In this document: positions 9 through 41,185 of the stretch, piece by piece
Position numbering within the stretch: the stretch's first letter is position 1
Layout of the letters: each line of letters opens with the position of its first letter
Source: Ranitomeya imitator
Lineage: Eukaryota
DNA length: 64,000 bases
Assembly (NCBI RefSeq): GCF_032444005.1
Contig: NC_091291.1
Span: forward strand, 25,172,001 to 25,236,000
Direction: 5' to 3'
Program-made: the position numbers and the translations under genes
Notes under the pieces: model-generated
Database searches by the model: none
The model's input: only the letters and a program-made list of their open reading frames with translations
What the model was told of the DNA's origin: nothing

Positions 9-155
9 GATCATATCCATCAGTGTTGCACAAGTCTCCAGTGCAGCAATTCACATAAAATCGATATTTAACACGTTCAAGGAATCCTGAACCCTGAAGA
101 CCACAAATAGATTCGTTGGCACAGCCTTTATATATCGACTTAAAATAATGTCCAT
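9..155 (-). CDS. Gene A exon 3, two-domain three-finger protein (SPF/PLI-gamma/PINLYP-like), second half of LU domain 1
   Basis: ag/gt-bounded 147-nt phase-1 exon, manually translated: (D)GHYFKSIYKGCANESICGLQGSGFLERVKYRFYVNCCTGDLCNTDGYD. Has the LU-domain CC-x4-CN signature. Exons 4-5 lie left of the window. Confidence 0.95.
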
Positions 156-239
156 CTATTAGAGAAGTAAATAGACATGATGAAACCTGAATTGAGGTGG
201 TGATACTTTTGTTTAAAGGAAGAGTTGAGTTTTTCTCAC

Positions 240-353
240 CGATGTAAAAGTATTGGCAGACGGTCATACATCCAGCTGCGAGACATTCAATCTCAGACAC
301 ATTACATGTGGTGGAGTTATAGGACACACCCGACATACATCTATGGGAAAACA
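240..353 (-). CDS. Gene A exon 2, first half of LU domain 1
   Basis: tttccag| ... |gtgag, 114 nt, phase 1-1: (V)FSHRCMSGVSYNSTTCNVSEIECLAAGCMTVCQYFYI. Confidence 0.93.
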
Positions 354-1040
354 CTGGAAACAAGAGGTGACAATCCAATAATATTAAATTGAAACAATAA
401 AAAAGGGGAATTCAAGTGAAAAGGGGAATATTTTAGTTGAGAACCATATTTTTCATATTTGTAGTCAACGAGACTCGAGATGAGCTTTAAGTCTCACTTG
501 TACTTTATTGAAACTGACCCTTTCTTTTTTTTTAGAAATATCTCTTATAGGGCATGGTTTTACTCCAAAAAATTTCACAAGTGTATCATTTTTTTACATA
601 ACCCACAATAAGGTAACAATATAATGTCTCAGGAAAATATCTTGATGCAAAACTTTAATTGGACACTTAACTGAGCGAAAAGTTTCAAGCAAGTCAAGTT
701 AGCTTTCGAGTTACATTATGGTAGTGACTGATGTAAGAAGCTGTTACCTCTATAAAACCATCTTGAAAGATGTGAATCTATATGGTCACATCAGTAGGCA
801 AAGGAGAAGTGAATCCTGTATTATTTGGGGGGCCCATTTTTTAATAGTCTAATTTTTCCAAGAATTGTTTCCATATCTGGCTATGGCTTGATGTCACCAC
901 ATTAGCCAGAATGATTCAGAATTTGTATTTCACATTAGCAAATACTTGCTGAAAATGAAGGAGAAACAATGCATTAAAGTTGCCGACACTTCTCGGTGAA
1001 CTATGTGTATATGCTGTCAACGGACTTTCTCTAGTCTTAC

Positions 1041-1092
1041 CTGAGCCGACAAGAGCAGAGATCACGCAAAGCAAAGCGACCAGGTTCTTCAT
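1041..1092 (-). CDS. Gene A exon 1, signal peptide
   Basis: Kozak ccaccATG, MKNLVALLCVISALVGS, then a gtaag donor at phase 1. Confidence 0.93.
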
Positions 1093-15374: not shown

Positions 15375-15541
15375 TCAATAGATTGAAGGTTTATTCATCA
15401 AGTCACTCAATTTTATGGAAGGAACATTACAGTTCAGGAAAATTCTTTTTTTTTCTGTAAGCGCGATACAGCTGTCAAAGTTTACTTTGCAGACAACGTC
15501 ATTAGCACAACCTTTAGAGGAAAATTTCTTACTTGTGACAC
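15375..15541 (-). CDS. Gene B exon 5 (end of LU domain 2 + C-terminal tail, stop)
   Basis: ctacag|, (G)VTSKKFSSKGCANDVVCKVNFDSCIALTEKKRIFLNCNVPSIKLSDLMNKPSIY*. No GPI or TM tail, so predicted secreted. Confidence 0.93.
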
Positions 15542-15709: not shown

Positions 15710-15859
15710 CAAAAACTATTAATTCCGCCCTATACTCAAAACATCTGTCCATGTCTCCAGTGCACTCCACCATGTGGTGACCCTTACATTCTTCCACAGT
15801 GTCCGTACAGTAGGCGGATGGACATAGTTTACCATTTGGTGTGGGATCATCTTTAGGAA
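15710..15859 (-). CDS. Gene B exon 4 (LU domain 2)
   Basis: 150-nt phase 1-1 exon: (L)PKDDPTPNGKLCPSAYCTDTVEECKGHHMVECTGDMDRCFEYRAELIVF. The NGxxCP motif is typical of PLI-gamma/SPF domain 2. Confidence 0.95.
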
Positions 15860-18252: not shown

Positions 18253-18399
18253 GATCATATCCATCAGTGTTGCACAAGTTTCCAGTGCAGCATTTCGCAT
18301 AAAATCGAACTATAACACGTTCATGGAATGCTGAACCGCGCAGACCACAAATAGATTCGTTGGCGCAGCCTTTATATATCGACTTAAAATAATGTCCAT
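18253..18399 (-). CDS. Gene B exon 3
   Basis: (D)GHYFKSIYKGCANESICGLRGSAFHERVIVRFYAKCCTGNLCNTDGYD, canonical splice sites. Confidence 0.95.
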
Positions 18400-18483: not shown

Positions 18484-18597
18484 CGACGTAAACAAATTGG
18501 CAGACGGTCATACATCCGGCTGCGAGACATTCAATCTCAGACACATTACATGTGGTGGAGTTATAGGACACACCCGACATACATCTATAGGAAAACA
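18484..18597 (-). CDS. Gene B exon 2
   Basis: (V)FSYRCMSGVSYNSTTCNVSEIECLAAGCMTVCQFVYV, canonical splice sites. Confidence 0.95.
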
Positions 18598-18848
18598 CTG
18601 GAAACAAGAAGTTACAATCCAGTAATATTAAATTGAGACAATAAAAAAGGGGAATTCAAGTGAAAAGGGGAATATTTTAGGTGTAATGAGAATCATGGTT
18701 TTCATATTCGTGGCCATCGAAACCCGGACATTTGTCATTGCTAACAATTTGATCCAATAATACCGTAAATTCTTGACTTTTCCATATCAAGAAAATGTGG
18801 ATGTTCTTCAAGTCCCACTTATACTTTATTGGAAATGACCTTTCTTAT

Positions 18849-21800
18849 CCTGGTCCTCCTCACCATATTCCCACAATCATTTCTACCTCCCATCCACGCT
18901 CTATCACAAACTTCCGTAACCTCTCTAACCTTATACCCATTCACCCAGCCCCCGCTTCCCCAGTCCCACTAACAGGAGCTCTGTGGAACGCTCGCTCTGT
19001 CTGCAACAAGCTTTCATACATCCATGATCTTTTTGTTACTACCAAACTTTCTTTCCTCGCTATCACCGAAACCTGGCTCACCCCTTCTGACACAGCCTCC
19101 CCTGCTGCACTCTCTTACGGTGGCTTCCACCTTTCCCACACACCCCGCCCCAGCAGCAAACATGGCGGAGGAGTTGGCTTTCTCCTGTCAGATAACTACT
19201 CCTTCACCCCAATCCCACTGCCACCCTCTGTTACCCTCCCTTCCTTTGAGGTGCACTTTGTGCGCATCTACTCCCCCACCAACCTCCAACTGGCTGTCAT
19301 TTACCGCCCCCCAGGGCCAGCCACCACCTTCTTTGACTACTTCACCACCTGGCTACTTCATTTCCTTTCTGCGGACATCTCCACTATCATCATGGGCGAC
19401 TTCAACAAACCCATTGACACTTCCCTCTCAGCTGACACTAAACTTCTAACTCTCACTTCGTCCTTCGGCCTCAATCAATGGTCTTCTGCAGCCACTCACA
19501 AAGACGGTCACACACTGGACCTCATCTTCACACGCCTTTGCTCTCTATCTAACCTTTCTAACTCACCTCTTCCACTCTCTGACCACAACCTTCTCACATT
19601 CTCATCTCTCTCCACTCCATGTCTACAATCCCCACCCCACAAACTTTCACACCCTCGCAGAAATCTTAAACATCTTGACCTACATTCATTCTCTGAATCC
19701 CTCCTCCCTCTCACAAACATAAGTTCCATACACAATGCGGATGACGCTACCACTCTATATAACACCACAATAGCTGTAGCTTTGGAATCTGCTGCCCCAC
19801 TTACACATACCAAAGCTCGCAAAATCAACAGACAGCCCTGGCACACCAGCCTGACCAAAGAACTGAGGCGAGCTTCCAGGGCTGCTGAGCGCAGATGGAA
19901 AAGATCCCACTCTAACGAGCACTTCATCGCATTCAAACAGTCCCTCACTACTTTCAAGACCACACTCGCCACAGCTAAACAAACCTACTTCTCATCTCTC
20001 ATATCCTCTCTGTCTCACAACCCTAAACAGTTATTCAACACCTTCAATTCTCTCCTCCGTCCCCCAGCACCTCCTCCCTCCCCACTTATCTCCACTGAAG
20101 ACTTTGCCTCATTTTTCAAGCAGAAGATTGATAGCATCAGAGACAGTTTTGGTCAACAACCCCCTGAGCCCTTCCTCCCGATTTCCCAGCCCTCCACCTC
20201 CAAAACCAACTTCTCCACCATTACAGAAGATCAACTCTCCACTCTACTCTCAAGATCGCATCTCACCACCTGTGCACTTGACCCGCTCCCATCCCACCTC
20301 ATCCCAAACCTCACCACAGTCTTCATCCCAACCCTAACCCATCTCTTCAACCTATCACTAACAACTGGTGTTTTCCCCTCAAGCTTTAAACATGCCTCCA
20401 TCACACCTATCCTCAAAAAGCCTTCTCTTGACCCATCCTCTGTATCTAGCTATCGCCCTATATCACTTCTCCCCTATGCCTCCAAACTACTGGAACAACA
20501 CGTTTACCTTGAACTGTCCTCCCATCTCTCTTCTTGCTCCCTCTTTGACCGCCTACAATCTGGCTTCCGGTCACACCATTCCACTGAAACTGCCCTAACT
20601 AAAGTCACCAATGACCTCTTAACCGCCAAGAGCAAGCGACACTACTCTGTCCTCCTCCTCCTCAACCTGTCGGCTGCCTTTGACACAGTGGACCATTTCC
20701 TATTATTACAGACCCTCTCATCCCTTGGCATCACAGACTTGGCCCTATCCTGGATCTCATCATACCTAACAGACCGGACATTCAGCGTCTCCCACTCACA
20801 CACCACCTCCTCACCTCGCCCTCTATCTGTCGGAGTCCCACAAGGTTCAGTCCTCGGGCCCCGGCTCTTCTCCATTTACACCTTTGGCCTGGGACAGCTC
20901 ATAGAATCTCATGGCTTTCAGTATCACCTCTATGCTGTCGACACACAGATCTACATCTCTGGACCAGATATCACCTCCCTTCTAACCAGAATCCCTCAAT
21001 GCCTGTCCACTATTTCATCCTTCTTCTCCGCTAGATTTCTGAAACTTAACATGGACAAAACAGAATTCATCATCTTTCCCCCATCTCACGCAACCCCCCC
21101 AACGAACCTATCCATTACAGTAAATGGCTGCCCACTCTCCCCAGTCCCACCAGCTCGCTGCCTCGGGGTAATCCTTGACGCTGATCTGTCCTTCAAACCA
21201 CATATCCAAGCCCTTTCCACTTCCTGCCGACTTCAACTCAAAAATATTTCACGAATCCGTTCATTCCTCAACCATGAATCTGCAAAAACCCTAGTCCATG
21301 CCCTCATCATCTCTCGCCTTGACTACTGCAACCTCCTGCTCTGTGGCCTCCCCTCTAACACTCTCGCACCCCTCCAATCTATTCTAAACTCTGCTGCCCG
21401 ACTAATCCACCTGTCCCCCCGCTATTCCCCGGCCTCTCCTCTCTGTCAATCCCTTCACTGGCTCCCCATTGCCCAGAGACTCCACTACAAAACCCTAACC
21501 ATGACGTACAAAGCCATCCACAACCTGTCTCCTCCATACATCTGTGACCTCGTATCCCGGTACTTACCTACACGCAACCTGCGATCCTCACCAGATCTCC
21601 ATCTCTACTACCCTCTTATCTCCTCTTCCCACAATCGTATACAAGATTTCTCTCGCGTATCCCCCCTACTCTGGAACCCTCTACCCCAACATATCAGACT
21701 CTCACCTACCATCGAAACCTTCAAAAAGAACCTGAAGACCCACCTCTTCCGACAAGCCTACAACCTGCAGTAACCACCGATCGACCAAACCGCTGCATGA

Positions 21801-22353: not shown

Positions 22354-22405
22354 CTGAGCCGACAAGAGCAGAGATCACGCAAAGCAAAGCGACCAGGTTC
22401 TTCAT
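22354..22405 (-). CDS. Gene B exon 1, signal peptide
   Basis: ccaccATG, MKNLVALLCVISALVGS|gtaag. Joined exons give 630 nt, 209 aa. Confidence 0.95.
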
Positions 22406-34964: not shown

Positions 34965-35131
34965 TCAATAGATTGAAGGTTTATTCATCAAGTCACTCAA
35001 TTTTATGGAAGGAACATTACAGTTCAGGAAAATTCTTTTTTTTTCTGTAAGCGCGATACAGCTGTCAAAGTTTACTTTGCAGACAACGTCATTAGCACAA
35101 CCTTTAGCGGAAAATTTCTTACTTGTGACAC
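34965..35131 (-). CDS. Gene C exon 5
   Basis: (G)VTSKKFSAKGCANDVVCKVNFDSCIALTEKKRIFLNCNVPSIKLSDLMNKPSIY*. Confidence 0.93.
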
Positions 35132-35300
35132 CTATAGGCAGAAAAACAACATAAACCATTAGGAAAAAAATGTTGCACTAGCCAAATTCTAATTACTTCC
35201 TGCAGATACATTTCTTTAATACACTATTAAATGCTTTATTTTTATTGTATCTGCATTGGGTAATACAATGTCGTCATCCTTTAAGAAATATTTTGCTCAC

Positions 35301-35450
35301 CAAAAACTATTACTTCCGCCCTATACTCAAAACATCTGTCCATGTCTCCAGTGCACTCCACCATGTGGTGACCCTTACATTCTTCCACAGTGTCCGTACA
35401 GTAGGCGGATGGACAGAGTTTACCATTTGGTGTGGGATCATCTTTAGGAA
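35301..35450 (-). CDS. Gene C exon 4
   Basis: (L)PKDDPTPNGKLCPSAYCTDTVEECKGHHMVECTGDMDRCFEYRAEVIVF. Confidence 0.95.
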
Positions 35451-35833
35451 CTGGAGAAATAAATACAATTGTTTGCATTAAATATTATCATTTACATATG
35501 ACTCACGGTCAAAAAGATATGTTCATATAATTCCATTATGTTGCTACTTTTTTTATAATTTTGGCTCCAGTCCTCTACCATGTAAATACAAAGTAGGAGC
35601 CAAACAACAAGCATAATTCTCTTCTTCCAAAAGATATAGCATTTTTTTTTATCATTATAGCCACATAAAGCTTGTTTTTTGTTAGATGAGTTGTACTTTT
35701 GAATGACATCATTCATTTTACCATGTGACGCACTGGAATGCGGGAAATAAAATTGCAAGTGTGTTGAAAATACAATATGATTCACAGGTCAATACAATTA
35801 CACAGATAACAATCAGGTATAGATTAGTATTTA

Positions 35834-37101
35834 CCGTATATACTCGAGTATAAGCCGAGACCCCTAATTTTGCCACACAAAAAACTGGGAAAACGTATTG
35901 ACTCGAGTATAAGCCTAGGGTGGGAAATGCAGCAGCTACTGCTAAATTTCATTAATAAAAATAGATACCAATAAAAGTAAAATTAATTGAGACATCAGTA
36001 GGTTAAATGTTTTTGAATATCCATACAGTTCATGATGGGCCCCATAAGATCCTCCATACAAAAAATTTGCCTCATAGAATGCTGCACGGATGTTAATAAT
36101 GCCTCATAAGATGCTCCATATTAAAATATGCCCCATGTAATGCTGCATAAAAGGTTAATGATGGCCCCATAAGATGCTCCACAGAAAAAATATGCCCGAT
36201 ATAATGCTCCATAAAGGCTAATGATGGCCCCATAAGATGCTCCACAGAAAACTATGCCCAATATAATGCTCCATAAAGGTTGATGGCCCCATAAGATGCT
36301 CCATAGAATAATATGCTCCATATAATGCTCCATAAGATGCTCCAAAGAATAATATGTCCCATATGCTGCTGCTGTGATAAAAAAAAAAATGACATACTCA
36401 CCTCTTGTTGCTGGGGGAGAGATGCCGGTGTCCTGAGCAGGCGGGGATACAGGCACGCTATGGGGGACAGGAGCTGGTGTCGCCGCTGGCTCAGGCCCCC
36501 GGCACTTGCGATATTCATCTGTCCCTGTTCCACCGCCGCACGCCGCTGTGTCTTCCGTGTCTCTGTAGTGACTGCTCAGGCAGAGGGCACGCACTAAACA
36601 CGTCATTGCGCCCTCTGACCTGAACATCACAGCCAGAGGATGACACAGCCCAGCAGTGGAACGGGTACAGGTGTATATCACATGGCTGACCCTCCCCGTC
36701 ATACTCACCCCATCCTGGCGCGGTCCCTGTTTCTCAGATGGTATCTGATGCCGGCAGCTTGTTCCTGTGTTCAGCAGTCACAGGGTACCACTCATTAAAG
36801 GAATGAATATGCGCTCCACGCCCATGGTAGTGGAGTTGCGTCAATATTCATTACTTTAATTAGCGGTACCATGTGACCGCTGAACACAGGAACAAGCTGC
36901 CGGCGCCAGAGACCATCTGAGAAGCAGTGACGTGCAGAGACCGCGCCAGGAGGGGATGAGTATGATGTGACAGCCGCCACTCCTGCCGCTCCCTCTCCCC
37001 AGCCGACCCCCAGGGACAATGACTTGAGTATAAGCTGAGAGAGGCACTTTCAGCCTAAAATAATGGGCTGAAAATCTCGGCTTATACTCGAGTATGTACG
37101 G
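35834..37101. mobile_element. Tc2/pogo-like element (paralogue of 15930-17292)
   Basis: ta|ccgtatatactcgag...ctcgagtatgtacgg|ta. Confidence 0.85.
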
Positions 37102-38035
37102 TAAGTTGTAAAAAAAAAACCTTTGGAAATTTGTAAAGAAAAAATGTCATGTGTGTCACCATTTTTCGAGAACCGTAACATTTGGGGGGCTGTGTGAGAG
37201 CTTATTCATTTTTTGTACCCTGATAACATTTTATTACAATGTTGCAGTTGTAAAAAACAGAATTCTGTCCTTTTTATTTTTTTTTCTGCTAACGCTGTTT
37301 ACCAATCCAATTAATTTATTTTATATTTTGATAGATTGGACTTTTCTGAATGCAGTGATACCACATATGTATACTTCTTATTTTTTTTAATTGTTCTATT
37401 TTTAATGGGGCAAAAGAGTTGTGATCATCAACAGACTTCCGGTTGTCATGATAACCTATCTGCGCCCCGCCCCCCTGAAAATGTCATGGTTGTGTCGATG
37501 GGAGCTTGGAATGATGCACCCCCTGACGGCGTCTGTTAAATGCCATTGTCAGAAAATGACAGCAGGATTTCACAGGATAACAGCCACGGCCGGAGCTCTT
37601 ATCCATCCACGTCTGTTAGAGGCACATGATGGCTGATTAAATCAGCCATCATGTGAGAGGAAAGATACGAGCTCGCCATGCGAGCCGACATCAAAGACAG
37701 GAAGTCAGCATATGGCATACAAGTAAGTCAAAGAACGTGAAAAGGTTAAACTTGAGAGGTCTAACCTACAAGAATAACGAGGTCTGTACAGCATTTCAAT
37801 CTCCAAACAAGAATGTTCCCACACCGGATAAATGTAAGAAGACTTGAAACAAAGTTTCTTGGAGGACTGCAAAACTTTTTAGTTAAAAAGGGTTAGTTCA
37901 GAGTTGGGATAGGCATAATTCTTGTTTTTGTATTAATGCTACGAGTCTCAGCCAGATGACAAATCTCCTGACCCAACCAGCCTTGTCTCCGTCTAGGAAT
38001 CTGTTGTTTTGGGTCACAAGACCAGTGGTCAAATA

Positions 38036-39462
38036 CCGTATATACTCGAGTATAAGCCGAGATTTTCAGCCCAAATTTTTGGGCTGAAAGTGCCCCTCTC
38101 GGCTTATACTCGAGTCAATGTGGGTGGCAGGGTCGGCGGGTGAGGGGGTGAGGGCGCTGAGGTATACTTACCTAGTCCCAGCGATCCTCGCGCTGTCCCT
38201 GCCGTCCCACGGGCTTCTGTGCTGCAGCTTCTTCCCCTCTTCAGCGGTCACGTGGGACCGCTCATTAGAGATATGAATAAGCGGCTCCACCTCCCATAGG
38301 GGTGGAGCCGCCTGTTCATTCCTCTAATCAGCGGTGCCGGTGACCGCTGACAGGAAGAGCTGCGGCACCGAAGACCAGGCAGAGGGACAGCGCGAGGATC
38401 ACCAGGACTAGGTAAGTATAGCATATTCACCTGTCCTCGTTCCAGCCGCCGGGCGCCGCTCCATCTTCCCGGCCGGCGCCTCCATCTTCCCGGCGTCTGC
38501 GCTCTGACTGTTCAGGCAGAGGGCGCGATGACGCATACAGTGTGCGCGGCGCCGTCTGCCTGATCAGTCAGAGCAGAGATGCCGGGAAGATGGAGGCGCC
38601 GGAACGAGACGCCGGGAGCTGCAATCAAGGGAGGTGAGTATGTGGTTTTTTTTTTTATTGCAGCAGCGGCGGCAGAGATTTCTATGGGGCACAATGAACG
38701 GTGCAGAGCACCGTATATGGCACAGCAATGGGGCACAATGAACGGTGCAGAGCATTGTATATGGGGCACAGCTATGGGGCACAATGAACGGAGCAGAGCA
38801 CCGTATATGGCACAGCAATGGGGCACAATGAACGGTGCAGAGCATTGTATATGGGGCACAGCAATGGGGCACAATGAACGGAGCAGAGCACTGTATATGG
38901 CACAGCAATGGGGCACAATGAACGGTGCAGAGCACCGTATATGGCACAGCAATGGGGCACAATGAACGGTGCAGAGCACTGTATATGGCACAGCAATGGG
39001 GCACAATGAACGGTGCAGAGCACTGTATATGGCACAGCAATGGGGCACAATGAACGGTGCAGAGCACCGTATATGGCACAGCAATGGGGCACAATGAACG
39101 GTGCAGAGCACTGTATATGGCACAGCAATGGGGCACAATGAACGGTGCAGAGCACTGTATATGGCACAGCAATGGGGCACAATGAACGGTGCAGAGCACC
39201 GTATATGGCACAGCTATGGGGCACAATGAACGGTGCAGAGCACTATATGGGGCACAGCTATGGGGAAATAATGAACAGTGTAGAGCACTATATGGCACAT
39301 CTATGGGGAAATAATGATCTATTTTTATTTTTGAAATTCACCGGTAGCTGCTGCATTTCCACCCTAGGCTTATACTCGAGTCAATAAGTTTTCCCAGTTT
39401 TTTGTGGCAAAATTAGGGGGGTCGGCTTATACTCGGGTCGGCTTATACTCGAGTATATACGG
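38036..39462. mobile_element. Second Tc2/pogo-like element, specific to gene C intron 3, with a 44-bp minisatellite (about 38690-39310)
   Basis: Perfect ccgtatatactcgagtataagccga TIRs and TA TSD. Empty site near 18165. Unit atggggcacaatgaacggtgcagagcactgtatatggcacagca. Confidence 0.92.
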
Positions 39463-39561
39463 TAGATATTTTCTCTATATTGCCCTGTAAATTAGCACAT
39501 TGACTGGGATTTACTCATTAGTCAAATATTACCCTACGATAAGCGACAACTTGACACTTAC

Positions 39562-39708
39562 GATCATATCCATCAGTGTTGCACAAGTCTCCAGTGCAGC
39601 ATTTCGCATAAAATCGAAGTATAACACGTTCATGGAATGCTGAACCGCGCAGACCACAAATTGATTCGTTGGCACAGCCTTTATATATCGACTTAAAATA
39701 ATGTCCAT
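39562..39708 (-). CDS. Gene C exon 3
   Basis: (D)GHYFKSIYKGCANESICGLRGSAFHERVILRFYAKCCTGDLCNTDGYD. Confidence 0.95.
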
Positions 39709-39792
39709 CTATTAGAGAAGTAAATAGACATGATGAAACCTGAATTGAGGTGGTGATACTTTTGTTAAAAAGAAGAATTGAGTTTTACTCAC

Positions 39793-39906
39793 CGACGTAA
39801 ACAAATTGGCAGACGGTCATACATCCGGCTGCGAGACATTCAATCTCAGACACATTACATGTGGTGGAGTTATAGGACACACCCGACATACATCTATAGG
39901 AAAACA
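39793..39906 (-). CDS. Gene C exon 2
   Basis: Identical in nucleotide sequence to gene B exon 2. Confidence 0.95.
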
Positions 39907-40582
39907 CTGGAAACAAGAAGTTACAATCCAGTAATATTAAATAGAGACAATAAAAAAGGGGAATTCAAGTGAAAAGGGGAATATTTTAGTTGTAATGAGA
40001 ATCATGGTTTTCATATTTGTGGCCATCGAAACCCGGACATTTGTCATTGCTAACAATTTGATCCAATAATACCGTAAATTCTTGACTTTTCCATATCAAG
40101 AAAATGTGGATGTTCTTCAAGTCCCACTTATACTTTATTGGAAATGACCTTTCTTATAGAGCATGGTTTTATTCCATAAAATTTCACAAGTGTAGTATTT
40201 TTTACATAACGCACAACACGGTAACAATATGTCTCTAAGTAAATATCTTGATGCTAAATTGTAATTGGACTCTAAACTGAGCGAAAAGTTTCAAGCAGGT
40301 CAACTTAGTTATCATTTTACAATATGGTAGTGCCTGATGTAAGAACCTGCTTCCTCTATAACAACACCATGGAAGATGTGAATCTATAGGAACACATCAC
40401 TAGGAAAAGAAGAAGTGAATCCTGCATTATTTGGGAGCCCATTTATTAATAGTCTAATTTTTGCAACAATTTTTTCCAAATCTGATTATGGCTTGATGTC
40501 ACCACATTAGCCAGAATGATTCAGAATTTGTATTTCACATTAGCAAATACTTGCTGAAAATGAAGGAGAAACAATGCATTAA

Positions 40583-41055
40583 TGCAGTCAAAGAACAAGA
40601 AGAAATGCGGCACTCACCCAATTGTAGCTGTGTAATTCGTGAGCTTTATTGGAAAAAACTATTTAATACATCCGTCAGGACATCAGGTATGCAGGAGGGT
40701 GCGGTAATGGAGTACGGACGATGGCCGTTTCGCGTCTGGACTCGTCGAAGCACTTATCGTGCGAAACGGCCGTCGTCCGTACTCCATTACCGCACCCTCC
40801 TGCATACCTGATGTCCTGACGGATGTATTAAATAGATTTTTCCAATAAAGCTCACGAATTACACAGCTACAATTGGGTGAGTGCCGCATTTCTTCTTGCT
40901 CTTTGACTGCATTGTGGATCTTGTTTGATATTTTATGCAGAGCACCATATACCCACAGCTTTCGTGACACCTGCTATTCAGCTGTTCTCTATTAGTCCTG
41001 CTCAGTGGAGCTCGTATTCCTCTAGTGCCGTCCTGTTCCTCTACATTCTTTGCCG
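40583..41055 (+). mobile_element. Penelope-derived pLTR insertion with 5' inversion in gene C intron 1
   Basis: 15-bp TSD GAAACAATGCATTAA at 40568-40582 and 41056-41070. About 153-bp inverted arms at 40581-40733 and 40761-40913. Hammerhead-like motif at 40737-40778, AATAAA and a GTGAGT donor. Absent from genes A and B. Confidence 0.82.
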
Positions 41056-41133
41056 GAAACAATGCATTAAAGTTGCCGACACTTCTCGGTGAACTATGTG
41101 TATATGCAGTCAACTGACTTTCTCTAGTCTTAC

Positions 41134-41185
41134 CTGAGCCGACAAGAGCAGAGATCACGCAAAGCAAAGCGACCAGATTCTTCAT
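41134..41185 (-). CDS. Gene C exon 1, signal peptide
   Basis: MKNLVALLCVISALVGS|gtaag. Joined exons give 209 aa. Confidence 0.95.

Follow-up and report, generated by a model that had tools for sequence, protein, structure and literature searches.

Gene structure and copies

Three minus-strand genes, designated A, B and C, lie in the window (the whole 64-kb stretch of Ranitomeya imitator DNA that was analysed) and were found with tblastn using exon 2 of gene B as the query. Their products are XP_069598966 (XP_069598966.1, P0091; gene A), XP_069597012 (XP_069597012.1, P0092; gene B) and XP_069597014 (XP_069597014.1, P0008; gene C), and the exons given in Table 1 match these proteins, exon by exon in the case of P0008. 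The database names are 'phospholipase A2 inhibitor and Ly6/PLAUR domain-containing protein-like' at NCBI and, for the gene A product, 'Sodefrin-like factor' in UniProt. Through introns and flanks, B shares 94-98% of its sequence with C; A is less close to these two, at 88-92%. [quoted passage not shown] The proteins are assigned to the SPFs on their domain architecture and database names, in a sequence set whose outgroups were fish proteins.

Table 1. Positions in the window of the three genes, of the codons discussed and of neighbouring features.
Feature	Position	Strand	Remarks
Gene A (P0091 / XP_069598966.1), 5' part	9..1092	-	Exons 1041-1092, 240-353, 9-155; remainder outside the window
Gene A Gly26	328-330	-	Codon as in gene B
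Gene A Cys34	304-306	-	Codon as in gene B
Gene A Cys50	256-258	-	Codon as in gene B
Gene A intron 2	156-239	-	84 nt, between the domain 1 exons; no in-frame stop
Gene B exon 1	22354..22405	-	Signal peptide MKNLVALLCVISALVGS and first base of codon 18
Gene B exon 2	18484..18597	-	Domain 1, first half (finger 1 up to the finger 2 tip); AG/GT sites, phase 1
Gene B exon 3	18253..18399	-	Domain 1, second half; closes with CCTGNLCN
Gene B exon 4	15710..15859	-	Linker and first half of domain 2
Gene B exon 5	15375..15541	-	Second half of domain 2, no CCxxxxCN; includes stop codon
Gene B Cys23	18581-18583	-	TGT; followed by Met, Ser, Gly26
Gene B Gly26	18572-18574	-	GGT; canonical LU Cys2 position
Gene B Cys34	18548-18550	-	TGT; canonical C3, usual partner gone
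Gene B Cys41	18527-18529	-	Codon read
Gene B Cys46	18512-18514	-	Canonical C5
Gene B Cys50	18500-18502	-	TGC; four residues past Cys46
Gene B Cys179	15468-15470	-	TGT; extra cysteine of domain 2 (NFDSC)
Gene B exon 5 A-run	about 15440-15455		GAAAAAAAAAGA; equivalent run in gene C; encodes K-K-R stretch
LINE open reading frame	18795-21773	+	992 aa, intact; within gene B intron 1, opposite strand
Gene C (P0008 / XP_069597014.1)	34965..41185	-	Exons 41134-41185, 39793-39906, 39562-39708, 35301-35450, 34965-35131
Gene C Gly26	39881-39883	-	Codon as in gene B
Gene C Cys34	39857-39859	-	Codon as in gene B
Gene C Cys50	39809-39811	-	Codon as in gene B
Gene C intron stretches of very high contig depth	35805-36142, 38002-38170, 38678-38846, 39185-39522		Seen in all four runs

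Each gene has five coding exons with intact reading frames, and all introns are GT-AG and in phase 1. Within each domain the intron falls at the tip of finger 2 (in domain 1 the exon 2/3 boundary is V55|D56, the predicted tip being 56-57). LU genes are laid out with a pair of exons per domain, split at the tip of loop 2 by phase 1 introns (PMC6600238), and the models of A, B and C show the same arrangement.

Contigs from four public runs belonging to four studies align to gene C with joints at 39793/39708, 39562/35450 and 35298-35301/35128-35131; the joint ends are CT..AC and the letters of exon 2 are unaltered. These runs are of uncertain kind, with tissue and sex given as codes, and were used as a basis for splice joints and not for expression level or strand. 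At the differences from gene C that were listed (L86V and two silent changes) the contigs carry the states of gene B. It follows that a B-type mRNA containing Gly26, Cys34 and Cys50 is made, and that it is spliced as modelled.

Several other features of the locus were observed. Intron 2 of gene A contains no in-frame stop whereas its counterparts in B and C do, which is probably chance; its retention, if real, would lengthen the tip of finger 2 by 28 residues. One R. variabilis protein (P0005, isoform X2) skips exon 3, ie the second half of domain 1 (39562-39708 or 18253-18399 here), and no joint of that kind was found among the contigs listed for gene C from the four runs. The gene C intron stretches of very high depth attract many partial or multiply fitting contigs, and look like repeats or transposon fragments present in high copy in the genome or in expression. 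The reading frame within intron 1 of gene B carries Exo_endo_phos (E = 4e-10) and RVT_1 (E = 2e-30) domains. The K-K-R stretch of exon 5 is longer by one Arg in P0096 (210 vs 209 aa), a protein taken from an older R. imitator assembly; this could be an allele or a difference in homopolymer length.

A large family with fast turnover, and a LINE lodged in an intron of gene B, could be taken to mean that the unusual cysteine pattern described below is a product of decay, or of faulty assembly or annotation in non-functional copies. We find that scarcely credible. The frames are intact and every splice site is GT-AG in phase 1; the contigs from the four studies are spliced, leave exon 2 unaltered and match gene B at the differences listed; and the same codons recur in the three copies and in orthologues from three further species, which keep Gly26, Cys34 and Cys50. 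The initial annotation had already argued against decay, and the genes are indeed functional, expressed SPF-type genes. Its argument for selection from the presence of the pattern in three copies, on the other hand, carries no weight, because copies so nearly identical across their introns inherited the pattern together and are not independent evidence.

Cysteine pattern of the products

The initial annotation described a loss of the second LU cysteine (C2) to glycine and an extra cysteine shortly after the fifth (C5), both common to the three paralogues. Direct reading of the codons bears this out. The first part of domain 1 of gene B reads Y-R-C23-M-S-G26-V-S-Y-N-S-T-T-C34-N-V-S-E-I-E-C41-L-A-A-G-C46-M-T-V-C50, with Gly26 at the canonical Cys2 position and Cys50 four residues past Cys46, and the same codons were read in A and C. 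When 85-90 homologues are aligned, Cys46 falls in the column of canonical C5 and never varies, whereas position 50 does vary, so Cys50 is the extra one, as had been claimed. The total for domain 1 is ten, also as first counted, and is made up of nine of the ten LU consensus cysteines plus the non-consensus Cys50. The domain closes with the CCxxxxCN motif, which is CCTGNLCN in B and CCTGDLCN in A and C. The canonical LU pairing on which the annotation relied, 1-5, 2-3, 4-6, 7-8 and 9-10, is confirmed by PMC6600238; with Gly26 in place of C2, the 2-3 pair leaves Cys34 without its usual partner. Two N-glycosylation sequons, N30-S-T and N35-V-S, flank Cys34.

Domain 2 has nine cysteines (C117-PSAY-C122, C129, C137, C144, C166, C172, NFDS-C179 and C192-N), ie C1 to C7 and two others. 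C8, C9 and C10 are absent as a motif, and the domain ends in FLNCN, with no CCxxxxCN. Cys179 is an extra cysteine that had been overlooked. The mature protein is consequently 10+9, a total of 19, and since this is an odd number at least one cysteine must be unpaired. Three cysteines, Cys34, Cys50 and Cys179, fall outside the 18-cysteine core of the beta-SPFs, and at most two of them can pair together. Of the compensated exchange first proposed, therefore, the loss of C2 and the gain of Cys50 stand, but the one-for-one closure does not, given 19 cysteines of which three are non-core.

Distribution of the cysteines in the family

About 90 relatives were retrieved with a domain 1 query (window:10-354:-, gene A, stop-free through intron 2) and two follow-up searches. 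Nearly all are dendrobatoid, from Anomaloglossus baeobatrachus, Dendrobates tinctorius, R. imitator and R. variabilis; the remainder come from a few other hyloid frogs and three fish outgroups. The full-length set comprised 66 proteins (63 frog, 3 fish), for which every cysteine column of the alignment was tabulated. Mature cysteine numbers are odd in 35 of the 66. An additional cysteine occurs at position 49, 50 or 54, in strand C of domain 1, in 30/63 frog proteins, and together with the odd totals this suggests that free thiols are tolerated, or covalent multimers formed, in this pheromone-like family. Four members are 11+9, with extra cysteines at 50+171 (P0032 and P0039), 54+178 (P0011) and 49+163 (P0038), and with that composition they could be fully paired only through an interdomain bond.

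In the pairing originally put forward, Cys34, whose partner Cys2 has gone, forms a disulfide with the new Cys50 that ties finger 1 to finger 2. Such a bond would replace the staple of loop 1, and Cys179 would be left free or engaged between molecules. C2, at position 26 or moved to 28, is present in 42 of the 63 full-length frog paralogues and Cys50 in 21. The full-length proteins include every combination of the two: C2 without Cys50 in 35, both in 10, Cys50 without C2 in 11 and neither in 10. The raw odds ratio for C2 loss against Cys50 is about 3.9 (35/10/10/11), in the direction that a Cys34-Cys50 bond predicts, and the eleven-cysteine forms with intact C2 and Cys50, such as P0020, are plausible stepping stones towards it. 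The combination of residues seen in A, B and C recurs in Engystomops P0073.

The association does not survive when relatedness is allowed for. On a maximum-likelihood tree built after removal of the variable cysteine columns, no fewer than 16 changes are required for Cys50 and no fewer than 8 for C2. Of 13 independent contrasts in Cys50, about 10.6 showed no difference in C2, and an independent-pairs sign test on the 63 frog paralogues gave no significant link between Cys50 and C2 loss (median p 0.6-1). Cys50 has been gained and lost largely independently of C2 across the family, and at the family level it does not serve specifically to make good the loss of C2. The null sign test and the number of changes mark position 50, together with the nearby positions 49 and 54, as a hot spot for cysteine gain and loss. 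Individual proteins tell against a Cys34-Cys50 bond as well. Cys50 coexists with an intact C2-C3 pair 10 times and is present with both C2 and C3 absent twice (P0049 and P0062), while Cys34 stands without a candidate partner in domain 1 in at least five full-length paralogues (P0009, P0012, P0013, P0016 and P0022).

Elsewhere in the family C2 has shifted from 26 to 28, two residues along strand A (P0040, P0044, P0050 and P0052 vs P0055, P0058, P0066 and P0067), and intermediates with both Cys26 and Cys28 exist. This appears to be a clearer compensated shift of a cysteine than that from 26 to 50, for which it provides an analogue.

The orthologues of A, B and C form a clade of ten proteins with support of 100/100: P0001 and P0100 (Anomaloglossus), P0007 (Dendrobates), and P0008, P0091, P0092, P0093, P0094, P0097 and P0009 (Ranitomeya). 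Gly at position 26 and Cys34 are retained in 10/10, Cys50 in 9/10 (P0009 has Ser) and Cys179 in 7/10, being missing from P0100, P0097 and P0009. Cys34 and Cys50 have therefore been together since before the aromobatid-dendrobatid split, and Cys179 is more labile. The joint retention of Cys34 and Cys50 in nine members from three genera, with Cys179 lost at least twice, is what a bond between the first two would lead one to expect. However, 54% of the columns of the mature alignment are invariant in the clade regardless, which makes co-retention at two sites weak evidence; and in P0009, within the clade itself, Cys34 persists after the loss of Cys50. The best evidence for the bond comes from three clean 10+8 proteins, in which Gly26 is accompanied by Cys34 and Cys50 as the sole non-core cysteines: P0097 (R. 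imitator), within the clade, and P0017 and P0041, outside it.

The joint absence of Cys50 and Cys179 from P0009 was considered as a sign of a 50-179 bond. It is a weak one, because P0097, the R. imitator orthologue of P0009, keeps Cys50 without Cys179, from which it follows that the losses in P0009 were sequential.

A bond between Cys34 and Cys179 across the domains, with Cys50 free, is one of the three pairings possible in a 19-cysteine protein, and P0016 (9+9) has Cys34 and Cys178 as its only non-core cysteines. We nevertheless regard it as highly unlikely, as Cys179 was lost three times in the clade with Cys34 kept each time and the geometry lends it no support.

Predicted fold and position of Cys34 and Cys50

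Against a Pfam gathering score of 24.8 bits for UPAR_LY6, P0008 scored 16.8 bits and even the canonical P0033 only 24.5 bits, and P0092 gave no match. When single exons were searched, exon 3 gave weak matches to UPAR_LY6 and PLA2_inh (the latter with E = 0.013, below cut-off) and exon 2 alone gave no Pfam match. A profile search against solved structures returned uPAR as the best match (E = 1e-6). The AlphaFold2 model of P0008, made with 25 homologues, had a pLDDT of 77.8 and a pTM of 0.71 with six strands per domain, and Foldseek matched it to uPAR, TEX101, CD177 and C4.4A with probability 1.0, TM about 0.5 and identity of 14-22%. A three-finger fold is accordingly predicted for the product of A, B and C. 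The model of P0033, a canonical 10+8 paralogue, had a pLDDT of 85.1 and a pTM of 0.78.

The DSSP strands of domain 1 are alike in P0008 and P0033 (A 20/21-29, B 37-41/42, C 45/46-55, D 58-67, E 76-81, F 84-93/94). The swapped protein is thus modelled with the same strand layout as the canonical one, its domain 1 being less confidently predicted (70-82 vs 88-91 in ten-residue blocks), which tells against a Cys34-Cys50 bond. Residues 27-29 are strand and 30-36 coil, and strand A is longer than strand B, so that A must have D as a further partner. In LU domains the edge of the sheet is formed by strand E (PMC6600238), and with A paired to D and F antiparallel to C, the order of strands would be B-A-D-C-F-E. 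In that order, which is reasoned from strand assignments and not measured on coordinates, three strands would separate Cys50 from Cys34, which would lie on the hairpin at the sheet edge. Counted from the bonded pair Cys23 and Cys46, residue 26 is three positions on and residue 50 four, so that their side chains would point to opposite sides of the sheet. As the strands concerned are not adjacent in a canonical sheet, a Cys34-Cys50 bond, if formed, would need finger 1 to be displaced from its usual place.

Weighing these results together, we consider a genuine non-standard disulfide linking finger 1 with the central strand of finger 2 possible but doubtful. It would have arisen stepwise, Cys50 being gained first on an eleven-cysteine intermediate and C2 lost afterwards. 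Were it true, it would have had more than one origin in hyloid frogs, namely in the clade of the window genes, in P0017/P0041, in the P0014/P0031 clade and in Engystomops P0073.

Comparison with known three-finger proteins

SPF subfamilies are distinguished by their cysteine patterns, alpha being 8+6, beta 10+8, gamma 10-12+8 and sigma 11+9 (PMC11659521). The proteins described here resemble the beta-SPFs in having a signal peptide and two tandem LU-like domains, the first ending in CCxxxxCN and the second lacking it (PMC8613984, PMC8904931), and in belonging to large tandem gene families in frogs. They differ in that typical beta-SPFs are 10+8 with C-x-x-C in domain 1 (PMC8613984), whereas here C2 is Gly, there is an extra cysteine past C5, and domain 2 has nine cysteines. 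With the sigma-SPFs of Nidirana daunchina, Plectrohyla and Boana (PMC11659521) they share an extra cysteine in each domain, a likeness seen in the counts; sigma-SPFs have 11 cysteines in domain 1, whereas these have lost C2 and are 10+9, an odd total. Up to 10 bonds are predicted in sigma-SPFs (PMC11659521), and ten bonds in an 11+9 protein require one between the domains.

The 2-3 bond is frequently deleted in LU domains, and non-standard bonds are sometimes added elsewhere (PMC6600238). It is the bond most often lost, as in the elapid 8-Cys toxins, medaka Bouncer A and the ectodomains of BMPR2 and ACVR2 (PMC6600238), but in those cases both cysteines have gone, whereas here only C2 is missing and C3 is kept. 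The closest structural matches to the predicted model, uPAR, TEX101, CD177 and C4.4A, are mammalian, GPI-anchored proteins whose N-terminal domain lacks bond 7-8 and not C2. Likeness to snake PLI-gamma, the phospholipase A2 inhibitor whose name NCBI gives these proteins, goes no further than the weak exon 3 match to PLA2_inh noted above, which is below cut-off.

Long-chain alpha-neurotoxins have a fifth disulfide in loop II, formed by two extra cysteines in a C-x3-C arrangement. The same spacing occurs here at the start of finger 2 (CMTVC), but the first cysteine of the pair is the invariant canonical C5, so there are not two extra cysteines in the loop. A local Cys46-Cys50 bond of that style was considered and is ruled out, because Cys46 is needed for the 1-5 bond. 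Among the relatives, P0024 of Anomaloglossus has the sequence CQFFC with two extra cysteines at 50 and 54 (C-x3-C, finger 2) and an even total of 12+8, which is reminiscent of the neurotoxin disulfide.

Amphibian pheromones of the three-finger class are known to depart from LU consensus connectivity. In plethodontid modulating factor (PMF) the pattern is altered despite canonical spacing, and in the SPF of Desmognathus ocoee both domains were found by experiment to be altered (Wilburn et al. 2022). By analogy, several bonds in domains 1 and 2 of the present proteins might differ from the consensus, and CCxxxxCN, the anchor of bonds 7-8 and 9-10, is missing from domain 2. The parallel is incomplete, since those patterns were mapped by experiment and the pairing here is only predicted, and since PMF kept its cysteine positions. 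In domain 1 only one of the ten consensus cysteines is missing and the spacing, CCxxxxCN included, is canonical, and the predicted six-strand layout and the Foldseek matches are those of standard LU proteins. We therefore judge wholesale rewiring to be unlikely.

A proposed open set of non-core cysteines

The explanation we place first, and to which we give about an even chance, is that the core bonds are kept, that the 2-3 staple has gone, and that Cys34, Cys50 and Cys179 form an open and labile set in place of a closed compensation. The core bonds of domain 1 would be 23-46, 41-67, 73-92 and 93-98. The staple of loop 1 would simply have been lost, as it has been many times in LU domains, and the three non-core cysteines would be evolutionarily labile and not party to a one-for-one exchange, with position 50 repeatedly gaining and losing cysteine whatever the state of C2. 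The ten proteins in which Cys50 stands beside an intact C2-C3, and the ten in which C2 and Cys50 are both absent, agree with this; the composition of P0097, P0017 and P0041, being just what a Cys34-Cys50 bond predicts, does not. Stepwise loss and gain of cysteines has been described across the SPFs (Wilburn et al. 2022).

Within the open-set explanation the leading specific pairing, held only tentatively, is a bond from Cys50 to Cys179 over the domain interface. It would be comparable to the extra bond of the sigma-SPFs and would leave Cys34 unpaired between its two N-glycan sequons. Against it, Cys50 outlasts Cys179 in the clade (9/10 vs 7/10). This pairing and the Cys34-Cys50 bond carry roughly equal weight. 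What remains of the weight of the open-set explanation goes to all three cysteines being free or in intermolecular bonds. Free thiols are unusual in secreted proteins.

Significance for the SPF family

No description of the Gly26/Cys50/Cys179 (10+9) pattern was found in the literature, and the proteins are on record as automatic annotations only. It is a new variant of cysteine pattern in a family known for shifting its cysteines, a modest addition and as yet an unproven one; a neatly rewired disulfide is possible. Many SPFs are expressed in the finger and arm glands of dendrobatid males (PMC12617036).

The SPFs, whose subfamilies are told apart by cysteine pattern, are the best-studied protein pheromones of vertebrates; yet to our knowledge the disulfides of only one SPF have been mapped by experiment. 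The present cluster provides a natural series, running from canonical 10+8 forms through eleven-cysteine intermediates to clean 10+8 swaps, 10+9 proteins and forms with the orphan cysteine only. It can serve to ask how disulfide patterns move within a three-finger scaffold, and whether free thiols or covalent dimers occur among the members with an odd number of cysteines.
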